Shown here piece by piece: positions 20,216-28,353 of a DNA stretch of 64,000 nucleotides (its first letter is position 1; each line of letters starts with the position of its first letter). Both the position numbers and the translations under genes were made by a program. The notes beneath the pieces were generated by a model that searched no databases, was not told the origin of the DNA, and saw only the letters and a list, made by a program, of their open reading frames with translations. The stretch lies in contig CP075497.1 in assembly GCA_021613535.1 (NCBI GenBank), forward strand, positions 11,594,001 to 11,658,000, given 5' to 3'. Origin of the DNA: Adineta vaga. Taxonomy: Eukaryota; Animalia; Rotifera.

Positions 20216-22308
20216 ATGGATAATTTCAAAAAACTTTCCAATCGTCAATTACGTCGATCAGTACTGATACGCGAAGGTGTATCTCTTATTGTAATTAATA
20301 ATTCAATACAAACTGAAATAGAGTTTACGGATTACAATAAAATCAATCATTGTTTCATTTTTCATTACAAAACATTTTTACAATGTATCAAACATTTCAA
20401 AAAAGCTTCGTCACAAGAAAATATCATTGTTTTGTTTATCAATTTTGATAATGATAAAATACAAACAATGCTCTTACAACTCAAATCTTATCGACAACTT
20501 CAAGCTGTTTACAATCTACAATTGCAAAACGAGAAGAATAATATCGAAAAAAAGCATTTGTTTGAAAATGAATCGAAATTAATTCAAAGTTTTGATCAAT
20601 GGGATTCATTATCTATCAATTTACAAAATCTTATCAATGAAACGGAGAAACGTATAAATGATACCGGTTTAATTTCTACATGCAATTCACCAGAAAAGGC
20701 ATTACGAGATCTAAAAAATGATTTGGGTCCATTCGTTTGGACACATACATTTCGAGGTTAGTATTGTCTTGTAGAGACAAAATTATTGATATTCGAATTA
20801 TTCTAGTACTTTTTATGGATATGCCTCATAATTCTAAAGAAGCTAAATATCAAATGCTACGAGAATGTCGAAAATGTTATCGTCATCAATCTTTTCAATT
20901 GAAAGAAATTGATCATTTTGAAAAAAACTATCGATCATGTGAAGCGATTAAATGGTACACAAAGCCCGGTTTTCTCTCCTCTGTAGTGAACAAAACTTTA
21001 CGTTCAAAGAATGTATATGCTTTGTATACATTTCGGTATTTTATTTTTGATCTTTGTGAAAGTCTAGCTTTGATGCGATATTGTGATGTGAAACCATTTT
21101 CTGTCTATCGTGGTACAATACTTCATCGTGATGAAGTGGAACAATTAAAGGAAAGTTCAACTGTATCTAGTAATGGGTTTTTCTCTTCATCATATTCACG
21201 TGATATTGCTTTGATTTTTGCCAATTCTGATCAAAATCGATCTCGAACAGATGCTTATCAATTCGTTCTATTTCAAATCAATGTTGATCTCAATTTATCA
21301 CCTGATCTCATTGTTGCAGATGTAAGAAAGGAAAGTCATATATCAGATGAAGAAGAATTTTTATTCGATCTGGGTACTACATTTATTATTACTAAGATTT
21401 TTTATGATGATTTAAATCATATATGGCATATTGAAATGAGAGGATCGAATGAAGTGGCAGAACGAAGTCGTGAATATGATGCTTATATGCATAAACGACT
21501 TTTGGAAACAAATGCTACCATTCTATATGGTCGTATGTTGGCTCATATAAGTGAATATTCATTAGCTGTAAAACATTTTCATCGACTTTTACGAGTATTG
21601 CCTATCAATCATGAAGATCGTTCGAACATACATTATCAATTAGCTCGTATGTATCGTTTTTTAGGTAAACATCAACAAGCTATTCACTATTTTCTATGTG
21701 CCAAATTATTATATCGTCATCAATTGCCTCACAAAAGTTATGAGTATGGAATGGTATTAGCAGGTTTGGGTACTGTTTACATGGAATTAAACGATTCAAA
21801 ACGAGCTTTAATTGTACTTGAACGAGCTAGTATTTATTATAGCTATCATTCGAATGAGTATAATACTGAAACGATTTTTCATTTCAATCGACTTAGTTAT
21901 GCTTACTATCTCGAACAGCAATATGAACGAGCATTAGAGTTAATTAATAAAACAATGAATTATTACAAAACTAAAATGCCTGCTGATCATCCAGGTCATG
22001 CTCAAACTTATCATAATCTAGGTTTAGTACAACGTGCAATGGGTAAGAGGGATGAAGCATTTGTATCTTTTAAAGAAGCGCTTCGCATGCGAGAAGTTCT
22101 ACTTGCATCTACCCATCCATATGTAGCTCGAACATGTTATCAAATAAGCTTACTTTTGGAAGAATGTAAAGATTATCCCTTAGCATTACAATTTGCCACA
22201 AAAGCACTTCGTATTCAGCAAGTTAAGTTACCATCTGATCATTCCGAACTCATCTTATCAAGTGAACTTGTTACAAAACTAACAATTCTTAATAATGAAA
22301 CTGTCTAA
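20216..22308 (+). CDS. ARTC/VIP2-like mono-ADP-ribosyltransferase domain plus TPR repeats (intron 20757-20806)
   Basis: AIKWYT...NKTLR helix bundle, R-S-E motifs (VYRG, FFSSS, DEEEFLF), then TPRs (HAQTYHNLGLV, HPYVARTC). Confidence 0.85.
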
Positions 22309-22474
22309 TAGTTTTCATCTAGTTTTACCACAATACCTCAAATGATACTTTCTCAAATCATTTGATTTATAATCAAGAATTCGTATATTTCTCACATGTA
22401 TATACTTCATATATAATAAAATAAATCTTCAATCGTACGATAAATATTGTTCTATTTTATTAAATGACATATAA

Positions 22475-23082
22475 TCATACAAGAACACTAACAATTGCTT
22501 GAGCAGCAATTCCTTCTTCTCTTCCAGTAAAACCCATTTTTTCCGTCGTAGTTGCCTTCACACTGACTCGGTCCATATCCAATGTTAATAATTCACTAAG
22601 TGTTTTACGCATAATATTCCGATGAGGAGATACATGGGGTTTCTCACCGATAATCGTGATATCTATATTAATAATTTCACCACCTTTTTCTTGCACCAAT
22701 TTTAGAGCATATTTAAGAAATATATCAGATTTGGCTCCCATCCATTGTGGATCATTGGGAGTAAAATGCATGCCAATATCACCGGCAGCAATTGAACCAA
22801 GTAAAGCATCAACGAGTGCATGAATTCCGACATCGCCATCTGAGTTAGCTTCGACGTCATATTCTGATGGAATTGCTACTCCACACAACATGATTTTGTT
22901 TGAAGGACCATTTTTTGTAGGAAGAAAACGATGGGCATCAAAACCCATACCAACTCGTGTCTGTTTCGATGTCATACCGTATCTAAAAATATACAATGTC
23001 TTATTAGTATGTCTTCAATTATCGATATTAATCAGAAAAACATTAGATAAATATTAATAGAAATATACTCTTGATGTTTCAT
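22475..23082 (-). CDS. ispF: 2-C-methyl-D-erythritol 2,4-cyclodiphosphate synthase; predicted exons 23082-23069 and 22982-22475
   Basis: RVGMGFDAHRF, SDGDV-x-x-HAL-x-DALLG, GDIG-x-HF and SVKATTTEKMGFTGREEGIAAQA. The Zn ligands D-x-H and H are kept. An 86-nt GT-AG intron joins the upstream ATG in frame (MKHQE-YGMTSKQ). Confidence 0.95.
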
Positions 23083-23501
23083 GTAGAAGTTGTTCGAAAA
23101 AATAACTATCAATCTCTACACAGTACAATTATGAATTTCATTCTATTTCTCTTATATAATTGTACTTTAGAAACAAAACAGCTCTACGAAACCACTTGAG
23201 ATTGCGATCTATACTCGAATACTTTATGAAGTTTTGCTCGAAATGAGTGTATTAGAAAAAGGACAACGTTATACAGCACACTTTCTTTGCATCATATAAC
23301 AGTTAATCGTCTACTATATCGAGTTACAGTTTCATGTATTATGCAAATGAAACGATCAGAAGCTTAAGTAAATACCTTTTTGTCGATAAGAAAATGAGTA
23401 AGATAGAGACACGATGTAATGGAAAGAAGGTAGTATTAAAATATATTGCAAGTAATATTTCTTAAGACATTAATCTAAAATATAATAAAATATGGACACT
23501 G

Positions 23502-24596
23502 TCAAAGTTGGCTGATGACAAATGTCTCTGGAATAGCGCTTGAAACAATTGTTGTAAAAGGAAAATGAGGAGTCAATAAATTTGCTATTTGTTCTGCGTG
23601 TTGAATATTTCGAGCAAGACCAAAGACAGCCGAACCACTTCCACAAAGAAGAGCACGCAGAGCACCAGAAGTAACAATCATATCATATGCTTTAGCGATA
23701 GTTGGATAAGCAGCAAGTACAACAGATTCAAAGTCGTTGGAAAGGCTTGTGGTCAGTAGTTCATTGATATCTGTTGAATTTTGTTTATTGTTACATAGAT
23801 GAGAAAGAAGTTGTTCAGTACTTGTACCAGGTTGCCTGTTTTGAATCGAGTCAAGAAGTGCATATGCATGCGCCGTTGATACACCTGTATCGGGACGCAC
23901 GATTACTCCATAAAGAGAAGGTAATTCAAAATTGAGCGACTCAATAATTTCACCATGACCACGCATACGTACTGGCTTTTCTGCCAGAAAAAGTGAAACA
24001 TCAGAACCAAGACGAGCTGCCATTGCCATTAGTGTTCGTTGATCAATAATATTATTAAAGTGAGTATTTAAAGCGCGTAAAACAGCCGCCGCATTACTAC
24101 TTCCACCACCAAGCCCTGCTTCAGCTGGTATACGCTTGTACAATTCTATTTTAATATGACAAGGTTTATCGATACGCTCAAGGTACATGTCAGCTGCTCG
24201 ATAGGCTAAATTTCGATTATCAATAGGTAGTTGAGAATCATTGCATGTTAATGTAATAGAATTTTTGTTGTCAGCTGGTTCAATATAGATACGCAGTTCA
24301 TCAGCTGGTTCACCAAATGGAACAACAAGCGAGTCAAGACTGTGATAAATATCGGTTGATTCCTTTTTATTGAATACATCCAATGTTAAATTGATTTTAC
24401 ATGGTGCACGAAGAAACATGGTGATACCAATCCGATATTCGTCTGCGCTCGTTCTTCCTGTTACTGTCGAGAATGTGAATATAAAGAGGAAAAAAAATCA
24501 AGTATTACATGTGCGTGTTTCATGTTGCTTTTTTCTCATATTTTAGTCGCCAATGAAAGGTGAACATATACCAGAATCATAAGGAACCAATGCCAT
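23502..24596 (-). CDS. ispE: 4-diphosphocytidyl-2-C-methyl-D-erythritol kinase (GHMP family); predicted exons 24596-24572 and 24463-23502
   Basis: APCKINLTL, YH-x-L-x-S, NLAYRAA, KRIPAEAGLGGGSSNAA, LGSDV, VST-x-x-AY, NDFE and GSGSAVF. The catalytic Lys and Asp are kept. A 108-nt GT-AG intron joins the upstream ATG in frame (MALVPYDS-VTGRTSADEY). Confidence 0.95.
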
Positions 24597-25582: not shown

Positions 25583-28353
25583 TTAAAATCCCGGTTCATG
25601 TCGAAAGGTAAACCTCAATTCATCACAATGACGTTTTATTTCAGCAGCCATGATTGCATTTCCAGTAAAGAATACAGCCGTCGATTTATGTTCAGTTTTA
25701 AATTTTGAAAATAATAATTTCCATGGTGGTCGTCCAACATGTGTCGGTGATTTCAATAGTGTATGCATGTCTTGTTGTTGCATTGCTGCATACATATTCG
25801 CAACAAGATCATAAGGAAGATGTTCCAACATTGCACGTTCATTCCTGCGTAATGATGTACAATACAAATGAATATCAAGATATCTGGATGATGATTGATT
25901 GTTGACCAGGGTTTGTCGTTGTAGTAGAAAGAGTTCTTAAATAGTTTTCTTGTTCGTTTTCAAATTCGTTGAGAATATTACGAAACCAGGAAAAGTTACC
26001 AACTTCACGATTAATCCATATAAAATCAACTTTTTTCAATTTTTGACTATTTAATCTTTCATGATTATAACTGATTGTATCACAATTAGGACAAACACAT
26101 CTTTCTTTTTGTAATCGTTGAATTAAACTATCTAAAGCACTTATCGAAGGTGTTACTCCAATTCCAGCACCAATTAAAACCACATGTTCATGATCGAAGA
26201 TATACGATGTACAAGTACTAAATGGACCTTCAATACAAATAATCGCTTCGGGATCATCCGCTGAAAATCGAATTTCTCCGATGTCACTGTTCATATTCTG
26301 ATGACCATTCTCAAATGTTATATCTGTTAATTCAGTGGCTAAACGTTTATGAAAATGATCATAAACTTTCTTTGTCCAATTTTTTTGCTTCATTATATTC
26401 AATTGAATAATGTCTTTTCGTTCAGGTGAACTCGAGATTGTAAATGGATGCCATTCCGTTTTAGCTAGAAAATAGAAAATAAATTCGTTTTCTTCATATA
26501 GAAAATATATTTACCGATTTTTGGTAAACAGATGTTAATGTAATTTCCTGTTCGAAAATTAAAACGTACTGGTCGTTCGATAATTAATGTTAAAAGATTA
26601 TTATATTCAAATCGAATTAATCTTAAACGTGTTCGACCATAACTTGATGAATATCGTTTGAGAGAATAGATTTTTTCCAAGAATAAAAGTGTCATTGGTC
26701 CAATTGCCCATTTCCAAAAATCTGGTGCATGAATAACAAGAAGAATAAATATTGGCCAAAATAAATAATGAGTATATTGAAATAAGAAATAAAAACCAGA
26801 TCGTTGTCGAATACATTGTAATGCAAATATAAACATAATCATCAATAAAACAAATAAAATATCTCCCGTAATTGGAGCAGAATGACCAACCCAACCAATT
26901 TCAGCAGCTGTTGTAAACATTGCTCGGGGCCATGAAAGTTCTAAATCAAAACATACACTAATTATACAAAGATACAGATCAATTCTTACCCTCTGTATGT
27001 GTAGCAAAATGAATCGTATGACCCAAACTATGTACCATAGCAGATATGAATAACATGGTTCCGACAAGACGATGTCCATCAATATGATCATCAACTGGAA
27101 TAATTAAACGAAGATAATGATATTTTCGTATAAATGTCATAATTTGTTTGAGCATGAGAGTAACTGCGACGAAATAATTAAAGTTAATCAACATTCCACC
27201 AACACGAGCAAACACTCGCCATACAGAAGTATTTTGAATAATAATAGTTCGATAAATACATACATAGATAATCAATATGATTTGTATTAGAAAATAAATA
27301 GCAAGAAAAGTTAAACGATTGATATTATTTTTGATATACATCCAACAACGTTGAAACCACGTTATTTCTTTTTCTTCTTCTTTGTCTTGATCGGGGATAC
27401 TAATAAGATAAAGAGATTTTAATACATCAGGATTTTGTTGAAGATTTCGATAGAATTGATTGAAATTGATTTCTTCGTGTTGACTTTCATGTTGAGTTGT
27501 TGGGAAAATCCCTTGCAGAAAGGTATCGACAACTTCTTTATGATGTTCATCATTTTTAAAGATTTTAAACTCAGATGAATAATTTTCATAAAACAAACGA
27601 ATCTCTTCCATTGTTATAATATTATCATTATTACTATCGAAGAGTTTAAATAATATTAAGGCTTTTACAGACATAGGTGAAGTCCAGAGAGCACGAGCGA
27701 TACGAATTATATCAGTACCTAAGATTTGATTATTTTCAAATGCAGATTCTAAATCAAATACCATTAATAGACGTCGACCTAGACGAAAAATAATCGAAAT
27801 TAGTTAACAAAAATTCAATAACATACTAAGCATGAATTTGACTTGAAACATACGGCCGAATTCTTCAATAGTAAAAGTTTTTGTACTAATATCTGAAGCA
27901 AAATATTTCTTAAAATATTGCCGATGTTGATCAGAGATTGGTTCACGAAATAGTTCACGAAACTGATGACTAACCACTCGCTCAGATGGAACACTTAGAG
28001 TAGATTTCGTTCTAGAAATATTTCAATAAAATCGCAATGAATTGATTTAAGATTACACTTACGAGAACAATCTTGATACGGCAGCACGCGAAAATCTTCC
28101 TCGAAGATAACTTTTTTGACTTCGTAATACAGGAGCTGGGTTTTCTCTCGATTCATCCTGTAAATCAATTGTTCTACCAATAATAGATCCGTGAGATTTT
28201 TCCCTTAAAAGAAAAACAATCGAATTAAATCGCGTTTAATTAATCATAGTTCCAATAGTTGCAAAGAAAAATAAGGATATTCTTTCGTTAAGTTCTTTAT
28301 TACGATTAACTTTTTTTGCAAAGGATAAAAAACGTCGGTGATATAACTTACAT
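25583..28353 (-). CDS. EF-hand NADPH oxidase (NOX5/RBOH-like), 6 predicted exons, with an apparent frameshift at ~25878-25936
   Basis: EF-hand FDSNNDNIITMEE; heme His pairs (GHRLVG...VHSLGH, THYLF...VIHAP); FAD-binding WHPFTISS; NADPH-binding GAGIGVTP; FIWINRE; GRPPW; C-terminal FRHEPGF. Confidence 0.88.

Follow-up and report, generated by a model that had tools for sequence, protein, structure and literature searches.

The locus described here raises the question of why an animal should keep two consecutive enzymes of the MEP (2-C-methyl-D-erythritol 4-phosphate) pathway. Animals use the mevalonate pathway; the MEP pathway is held to be missing from them altogether, and on this ground its enzymes are regarded as drug and herbicide targets that are safe for animals. 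IspE phosphorylates 4-diphosphocytidyl-2-C-methyl-D-erythritol (CDP-ME) with ATP to CDP-ME 2-phosphate (CDP-MEP), which IspF converts to 2-C-methyl-D-erythritol 2,4-cyclodiphosphate (MEcPP, also written MEcDP) and CMP. We analysed 64,000 nucleotides of the genome of the bdelloid rotifer Adineta vaga, positions 11594001–11658000 of contig CP075497.1 in the 100.8 Mb, six-contig assembly GCA_021613535.1. This whole stretch is called the window, and positions given without further qualification follow its own numbering. Homologs of both enzymes lie on its minus strand: a CDP-ME kinase gene, ispE (23502–24419; 305 amino acids, a single exon with an ATG start), and a MEcPP synthase gene, ispF (22475–22975; 166 amino acids, a single coding exon). 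The open reading frame of the latter extends over 22475–22996 and its first ATG is at 22975. Both frames are intact and co-oriented, as an initial annotation, made by a model from the letters alone, had noticed. That annotation put them about 420 bp apart, whereas 526 bp separate the IspE stop from the IspF ATG, and its outer limit at 24596 falls in non-coding sequence 177 bp upstream of the IspE ATG, in a region with two inverted CCAAT boxes. On balance, the reading we lean towards is that the two genes form a stand-alone module that makes MEcPP, fed by CDP-ME of microbial or of unrecognised endogenous origin.

The family membership of both proteins was examined with curated models. IspE scored 176.7 bits against the equivalog model TIGR00154 (cut-off 138.7), with residues 3–280 covered, and contained both GHMP kinase domains (PF00288, GHMP_kinases_N, 58.2 bits; PF08544, GHMP_kinases_C, 32.8 bits). 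Similarly, IspF reached 200.3 bits against PF02542 (cut-off 26.7) and 193 bits against TIGR00151 (cut-off 116.45). When the proteins were aligned to solved structures (1uek and 3pyd for IspE, 1t0a for IspF), the catalytic motifs were in place; together with the scores above the curated cut-offs, this bears out the diagnostic motifs and catalytic residues that the initial annotation had reported. IspE columns were called strongly conserved when at least 85% conserved in 81 bacterial sequences, and were compared with 12 rotifer rows: 37 of the 45 such columns were kept in all 12. Lys8, Asn10, His26, Lys95, the glycine-rich loop 101–111, Asp140 and Thr182 are present in all rotifer orthologs. The rotifer protein thus has in common with the bacterial enzymes of Thermus thermophilus (1uek) and Mycobacterium (3pyd) the GHMP domains, the glycine-rich phosphate loop and the conserved Lys, Asn, His and Asp. 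It differs from them in its place on an animal chromosome, its eukaryote-type candidate promoter, its AT-rich codon usage and the lack of a partner ispD, and its activity is predicted.

In IspF, 30 of the 40 strongly conserved bacterial columns were kept in the rotifers. The zinc ligands Asp13, His15 and His52 were found in 10 of 10 rotifer rows, the metal-binding Glu145 in nine, with Asp in the remaining one, and the active-site residues Ser45, Asp46, Asp48, Lys140, Thr142 and Thr143 were kept as well, Ser45 in all rows. The zinc ligands and the metal-binding Glu have been named as strictly conserved in IspF (PMC3927217). Bacterial IspF (1t0a, and the IspF half of IspDF) has the same zinc ligands, Mg/Mn-binding Glu and active-site Ser, Asp, Lys and Thr. 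Because nearly all conserved columns are kept, including every residue tied to catalysis, we took canonical chemistry as the default. No plastid-type transit peptide was evident on either protein, in agreement with the initial annotation; the orthologs share their start ATGs, and the spliced 5′ exon of ispF brings no additional in-frame ATG.

Bacterial-type coding sequences without introns in an animal assembly could in principle stem from contaminating DNA or a chimeric assembly, or be functionless genes in decay. The GC content across the pair was 0.34, compared with 0.29–0.35 in the flanks. On the upstream side of ispE lies a multi-exon NADPH oxidase/ferric reductase gene (about 25583–27094 and beyond, minus strand). 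On the other side, convergent with ispF, there is an open reading frame of 523 amino acids (20737–22308, plus strand) with tetratricopeptide (TPR_12) repeats and a weak N-terminal match to NAD:arginine ADP-ribosyltransferase (ART). With an intron-bearing oxidase and a TPR/ART-like gene as neighbours, the earlier statement that the pair is embedded among spliced metazoan genes holds. The closest named ortholog is that of Adineta ricciae (IspE identity 76%), where the annotated order is zf-AN1, cupin, NADPH oxidase, ispE, ispF, TPR. In Rotaria socialis the order is ispE, ispF, TPR, and in Didymodactylos carnosus the ispE–ispF tandem stands amid other neighbours. The locus and its neighbours recur in independent A. 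ricciae assemblies. In addition, one 2.8 kb contig from a DNA run of 2013 joins ispF to at least 1.9 kb of neighbouring sequence. It is clear from the host-like GC content, the neighbours common with A. ricciae and this contig that there is no join with contaminant DNA.

All eight coding sequences compared (ispE and ispF of A. vaga, A. ricciae, R. socialis and D. carnosus) are intact. The ratio of nonsynonymous to synonymous change (dN/dS, pairwise Nei–Gojobori) was 0.20–0.35 for IspE and 0.09–0.17 for IspF, well below 1; in the deep comparisons, synonymous sites were almost saturated. The deepest split among the sampled bdelloids is that of Didymodactylos from Adineta and Rotaria, and the pair has been kept under purifying selection since before it. 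Host-like GC content, animal neighbours, the tandem in other bdelloids, intact frames, low dN/dS and the 2013 contig together exclude contamination, chimerism and pseudogene decay, and a spliceosomal intron with RNA-like support, described below, also stands against them. These are integrated rotifer genes, and we regard the contrary explanation as hardly credible.

The rest of the MEP pathway was sought in the complete 100.8 Mb genome by six-frame searches with hidden Markov models (HMMs), exon by exon; control genomes were matched in every MEP-gene search. A single ispE and a single ispF were found in the whole genome, both at this locus. There was no ispD in the genome by TIGR00453, nor by PF01128 even at E ≤ 0.1, and no dxr, ispG or ispH by TIGR00243, TIGR00612 and TIGR00216, respectively. 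The best match to the dxs model (100.6 bits; cut-off 466) was a transketolase, with 312 bits on a transketolase model as compared with 93 bits for dxs. The initial annotation had seen no dxs, dxr, ispD, ispG or ispH in the window, and this absence extends to the whole genome. HMG-CoA (3-hydroxy-3-methylglutaryl-coenzyme A) reductase was recovered by the same method as four exons, which shows that multi-exon genes were detectable and that the mevalonate route is present. Two conserved consecutive enzymes would fit a complete MEP pathway whose genes are dispersed in the animal genome, which the initial annotation had offered as one possibility. For this genome such a pathway is refuted within the limits of homology searching, and we consider it very improbable.

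The genome has the mevalonate pathway and lacks dxs, dxr, ispD, ispG and ispH, so the module cannot contribute to isoprenoid synthesis. On the reading of a stand-alone MEcPP-forming module, both enzymes would act in the cytosol with canonical chemistry: IspE would convert CDP-ME and ATP to CDP-ME 2-phosphate, and IspF would convert this to MEcPP and CMP. MEcPP would be the end product, or the module would process its substrate towards MEcPP, and CDP-ME would be taken from ingested microbes or made by an unrecognised cytidylyltransferase. The enzymatic activity, the substrate with its source and the physiological role are what we infer here.

Several points speak against this reading, and the first group concerns the substrate. 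No enzyme able to supply CDP-ME was found in the genome by the HMM searches, and a gene that is split into many pieces or strongly diverged could escape a search made exon by exon. A genome search with PF12804 (NTP_transf_3) gave three weak matches. The best of them, C3:3657979–3658371 on the minus strand (40.9 bits, weak), is a putative nucleotidyltransferase in an open frame of 262 amino acids; no other candidate of the family lies within one open frame. The host enzyme ISPD/CRPPA was also considered as a feeder of the module and was not supported, there being no PF01128 or TIGR00453 match in the genome. We also noticed that on an Armatimonadota-like metagenome contig carrying one of the nearest bacterial relatives (L016, 5001–6708), ispE overlaps a downstream NTP_transf_3 gene instead of having a canonical ispD nearby; to judge from this arrangement, that lineage may use the gene as a cytidylyltransferase partner of non-standard type.

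The second group concerns the product pocket of IspF. A His–Ser pair beside the zinc and MEcPP site has been described as identical in more than 96% of IspF sequences (PMC3927217). The histidine of this pair, His44 (codon 22844–22846 in A. vaga), has given way to Asn in nine of the ten rotifer rows, which come from Adineta, Rotaria and related rotifer sequences from metagenomes; Didymodactylos alone keeps it. The near-invariant Pro72 is replaced by Thr, Ala or Ser. These, together with an upstream ispE rather than ispD and a spliced 5′ untranslated region (UTR), are the features in which rotifer IspF departs from the bacterial enzymes. The changes at His44 and Pro72 are lineage-specific and, as judged from the alignment, could alter the chemistry.

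They bear on an alternative in which the pair has acquired a new function: IspE would phosphorylate some other CDP-activated alcohol within reach of the animal or of further genes it has acquired, for example a CDP-polyol, and IspF would cyclise the product to a different cyclic (di)phosphate and CMP. Such a change would agree with the lack of ispD, dxr or dxs for making CDP-ME, with the substitutions in the product pocket of Adineta and Rotaria, and with strong purifying selection despite the missing supply of the canonical substrate. Against it, almost every conserved residue of IspE is the same throughout the rotifers, the substrate-side residues and the catalytic Lys and Asp among them; Didymodactylos keeps the histidine, so the change was not ancestral to the module; and no cytidylyltransferase of the PF01128 type is present. 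We know of no alternative substrate for an IspE–IspF pair, and we think a new function rather unlikely.

A truncated pathway that ends at the same compound is known from a bacterium. Listeria innocua makes its isoprenoids by the mevalonate route and has kept MEP genes up to MEcDP, which has been read as MEcDP mattering as an antioxidant or signal (PMC11192765). The rotifer resembles it in having the mevalonate route, in lacking ispG and ispH and in keeping enzymes that end at MEcDP, and the likeness points to a role outside isoprenoid synthesis. However, L. innocua keeps the enzymes from DXS to IspF and can make MEcDP de novo, whereas the rotifer has only the last two steps, and the first case is a loss within a bacterium while the second is a gain by an animal. 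Bacterial ispDF operons and IspDF fusions also couple MEP enzymes at the gene level, as in the rotifer; there, however, steps 3 and 5 (IspD and IspF) are coupled, and here steps 4 and 5 (IspE and IspF).

The origin of each gene was followed through its nearest relatives, taken as the best 120 matches per protein. Among these, the named matches were bdelloids and bacteria only. The best non-rotifer matches of IspE were 41–50% identical, and all the named ones belonged to Armatimonadota (Armatimonas, Armatimonadaceae, Capsulimonadales). For IspF, the best non-rotifer matches were 53–61% identical and the named ones were Alphaproteobacteria (Asticcacaulis, Phenylobacterium, Stellaceae and a Rickettsiales metagenome-assembled genome, MAG). 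In the first, quick trees, two constrained searches beat the free search; the quick trees were replaced by careful maximum likelihood (ML) searches and the tests were repeated. In the careful IspF tree the ten rotifer rows form one clade (support 98/99), nested in alpha-like groups of 19 (97/89), 23 (99/89) and 43 rows (100/99), and the IspF proteins of Armatimonas rosea-type genomes lie far outside the rotifer and alpha-like clades. In the careful IspE tree a clade of 43 rows (100/99) contains the rotifers along with Armatimonas, Armatimonadaceae and Capsulimonadales. This tree has 93 rows, none of them labelled as Alphaproteobacteria; it is from the named matches among the best 120 together with the tree that IspE is judged not to be alpha-like. 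As far as these trees tell, both genes were horizontally transferred, are nested in bacterial clades and have become fixed in bdelloids.

The gene surroundings in bacteria differ in a similar way. The nearest IspF genes are monofunctional and follow ispD beside dus and ntrY, which we take to be an alphaproteobacterial arrangement. Beside the nearest IspE genes are coaBC, gmk and remA, with no ispF in the vicinity. When 97 bacterial ispE loci were inspected, ispF lay within the flank at one of them, and there the order was ispDF followed by ispE. In a sample of 121 genomes of the IspE donor phylum, those with the best IspE (44–47%) had an IspF only 39–42% identical to the rotifer protein, and those with the best IspF (52%) had an IspE of 34–40%. 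IspF identity in the alpha-like group is as high as 55–61%. Because the nearest lineages differ and because ispE–ispF adjacency was seen at 1 of 97 loci, in the opposite order, the cluster was most likely put together in the rotifer lineage. The initial annotation had proposed a horizontally acquired mini-cluster: its bacterial origin and its integration into an animal chromosome stand, and its arrival as a single cluster does not agree with the different nearest lineages and the rare adjacency. An additional sample, centred on an 'uncultured Enterobacteriaceae' MAG as a possible alphaproteobacterial source, was set aside; IspF identity there was at most 50% and the genomes were small, so that they are evidently not Pseudomonadota.

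A single transfer from one unsampled bacterium that carried adjacent ispE and ispF, the latter of alpha-like type, is the alternative: adjacent co-oriented genes for consecutive steps are what the transfer of an operon is expected to leave; moreover, for many of the nearest metagenomic relatives there is no taxon label. The approximately unbiased (AU) test gave different answers in the two sets of trees. In the poorer quick tree a shared origin was not rejected (p = 0.40), and in the careful tree a grouping of rotifer IspF with the Armatimonas-type IspF was rejected (delta log-likelihood (lnL) 67.5, p = 0.0115); the tested group was named after the data had been seen. None of the 121 genomes of the IspE donor phylum matches both genes well, the nearest IspE contigs have no ispF and the nearest IspF genes follow ispD, and the one ispE locus with a nearby ispF has the opposite order. 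A fused IspE+IspF query found both domains in one protein only in Rotaria gene models among its top matches, and no bacterial IspE–IspF fusion was found. We therefore hold a single transfer to be improbable; the trees and gene neighbourhoods are read most simply as two transfers, after which the genes came to lie side by side in the rotifer lineage.

One result is at odds with a single rotifer origin of ispE. The ML IspE tree puts Didymodactylos IspE among bacterial sequences, apart from the other rotifers; rotifer monophyly was not rejected (delta lnL 14.5, p-AU 0.30). One origin of rotifer IspE is favoured because the gene order and the intron are common to these species and IspF is monophyletic. 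We observed separately that the D. carnosus IspE (contig L012, 6001–6888) is 48–54% identical to other bdelloid IspEs, about as distant as bacterial ones are, and that the IspF of this species groups normally with the rotifers. Fast evolution or gene replacement could account for the distance of the IspE. On the reading of two transfers, the ancestor of living bdelloids would have gained IspE from a donor of Armatimonadota type and IspF from a donor of alphaproteobacterial type, and the two genes would have ended adjacent, in reaction order.

That bdelloids carry horizontally acquired bacterial genes is stated in what PMC4784904 cites from Gladyshev et al. (2008). The ispE–ispF pair is like other such acquired genes in its bacterial origin, host-adjusted composition, gained intron, expression and surrounding host genes. 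It differs from them in being a pair for consecutive steps from apparently different donors, adjacent, with a transcript structure that is probably common to both, and conserved across the genera sampled.

Transcription of the pair was examined in three RNA-like runs from two studies (X1, X2 and X5); their RNA nature is guessed and the evidence consists of assembled contigs. The contigs cover only 22442–22982 and 23376–24346, of which 22442–22982 falls on ispF and 23395–24346 on ispE. There are no contigs of these runs over 23053–23286, beyond 24457 or before 22350, whereas the DNA-like run X9 covers every bin. In run X1 a joint, 22982|23376, skips 393 nt; the skipped segment has the ends CT..AC on the plus strand, which are GT..AG on the minus strand. 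It is a spliceosomal intron (22983–23375, minus strand) between the 3′ region of ispE and ispF. Beyond the joint, its contig reaches 37 nt or more upstream of 23376, and a further X1 contig (23395–23557) crosses the ispE stop codon (23502–23504). As this contig runs from the IspE coding sequence across the stop to 23395, the 3′ end of ispE passes without a break into the exon that is spliced to ispF. The 126-nt intercistronic segment (23376–23501, minus strand) is accordingly both 3′ UTR of ispE and, after splicing, the 5′ exon of ispF. Read in the IspF frame, it contains a stop codon that no ATG follows, and hence IspF starts at 22975. Where the initial annotation would have taken a lack of transcripts as a refutation, there are RNA-like contigs over both genes with a spliced GT..AG joint.

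The splice sites are conserved among species. A donor shortly after the ispE stop is found at +127 to +130 in Adineta and Rotaria and at +18 in Didymodactylos, and a TTTTAG acceptor 7–11 nt before the IspF ATG is present in A. vaga, A. ricciae, R. socialis and D. carnosus. This structure suggests that ispE and ispF form one transcription unit. On the opposite side, no single contig record of X1, X2 or X5 spans both genes, and contigs of this kind cannot show transcript starts or ends, nor one molecule that holds both genes. We conclude that the pair is probably co-transcribed and that its expression may be truly bicistronic.

The ends of the unit carry eukaryote-type signals. By pattern search, an AATAAA poly(A)-type signal with a putative function lies at 22456–22461 (minus strand), 14 nt past the ispF stop. 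It is the sole minus-strand AATAAA downstream of the ispE stop in the unit, and its absence between the genes is only weakly informative in such AT-rich sequence. Two CATTGG motifs (inverted CCAAT) at 24587–24592 and 24550–24555, minus strand, make a candidate promoter. They precede the IspE ATG by about 130 and 170 nt and are inside blocks conserved in A. vaga, A. ricciae and R. socialis, and the conserved sequence looks like a eukaryotic promoter gained by a bacterial gene. An ispE 5′ micro-exon had also been proposed here; on reading the sequence, the join would meet a stop at once and add no residues, and the conserved stretch resembles CCAAT boxes. The CCAAT-box promoter region, ispE, the intron, ispF and the poly(A) signal would then have been kept as one unit.

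This arrangement is reminiscent of the spliced-leader operons of nematodes and other animals, which it resembles in the single strand, the short spacer, the acceptor just before the downstream ATG and the one terminal poly(A) signal. The difference is that the rotifer contigs show cis-splicing only, and no spliced leader was seen on the contigs of X1, X2 and X5. Rotifers have spliced-leader trans-splicing, and operons in rotifers had not been reported (PMC7986045). Gene models of Rotaria sp. Silwood1 and R. sordida (P0136, P0145, P0146 and P0208) fuse IspE, minus its last approximately 25 residues, to IspF, and P0146 holds a duplicated N-terminal piece of IspF. We treated these fusions as unverified predictions, because R. 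socialis has no matching in-frame GT donor and the A. vaga donor comes past the stop codon; either artefacts of gene prediction or isoforms peculiar to certain species could account for them.

MEcPP has antioxidant, stress-signalling and chromatin-loosening roles in bacteria and plastids. Going one step beyond a stand-alone MEcPP-forming module, we put forward tentatively, as something possible rather than probable, that bdelloids built a two-gene 'operon' from two unrelated phyla, with MEcPP or a related cyclic diphosphate serving as a stress metabolite or signal and the precursor being microbial or endogenous. If this were true, the product could have a stress role, for example against oxidative damage from desiccation and radiation, a cyclodiphosphate metabolism would here be seen in an animal for the first time, and a polycistronic unit would be documented for the first time in a rotifer.

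That genes have been transferred into bdelloids is well known, and the two proteins carry automatic database names. A full-text literature search found no paper that discusses bdelloid ispE or ispF. What is new is an animal that has just the two final steps leading to MEcPP; new as well are the two genes with apparently different donors and the conserved, spliced pair that is probably co-transcribed. An animal clade thus retains exactly two steps ending at MEcPP, under purifying selection. A value of MEcPP apart from isoprenoid synthesis has been proposed for bacteria and plastids (PMC11192765). The rotifer pair lends support to this idea of an independent value, and does so in an organism renowned for tolerating desiccation and radiation. 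In addition, it offers a clean example of functional clustering after transfer, with genes of two donors in pathway order in one spliced unit whose co-transcription is probable. The claim is directly testable by metabolite mass spectrometry, enzyme assays and long-read RNA sequencing.

Two further observations were made around the locus. The NADPH oxidase/ferric reductase gene upstream of ispE adjoins a cupin gene, and the order is the same in A. ricciae (contig L010, 1015–5371). Additionally, 25 nt are inserted behind 22441 in the DNA run of 2013, a short way beyond the poly(A) signal of ispF. The RNA-like X5 contig that ends at 22442 has at its end the last 12 letters of this insertion, which indicates a transcribed allelic or strain indel.

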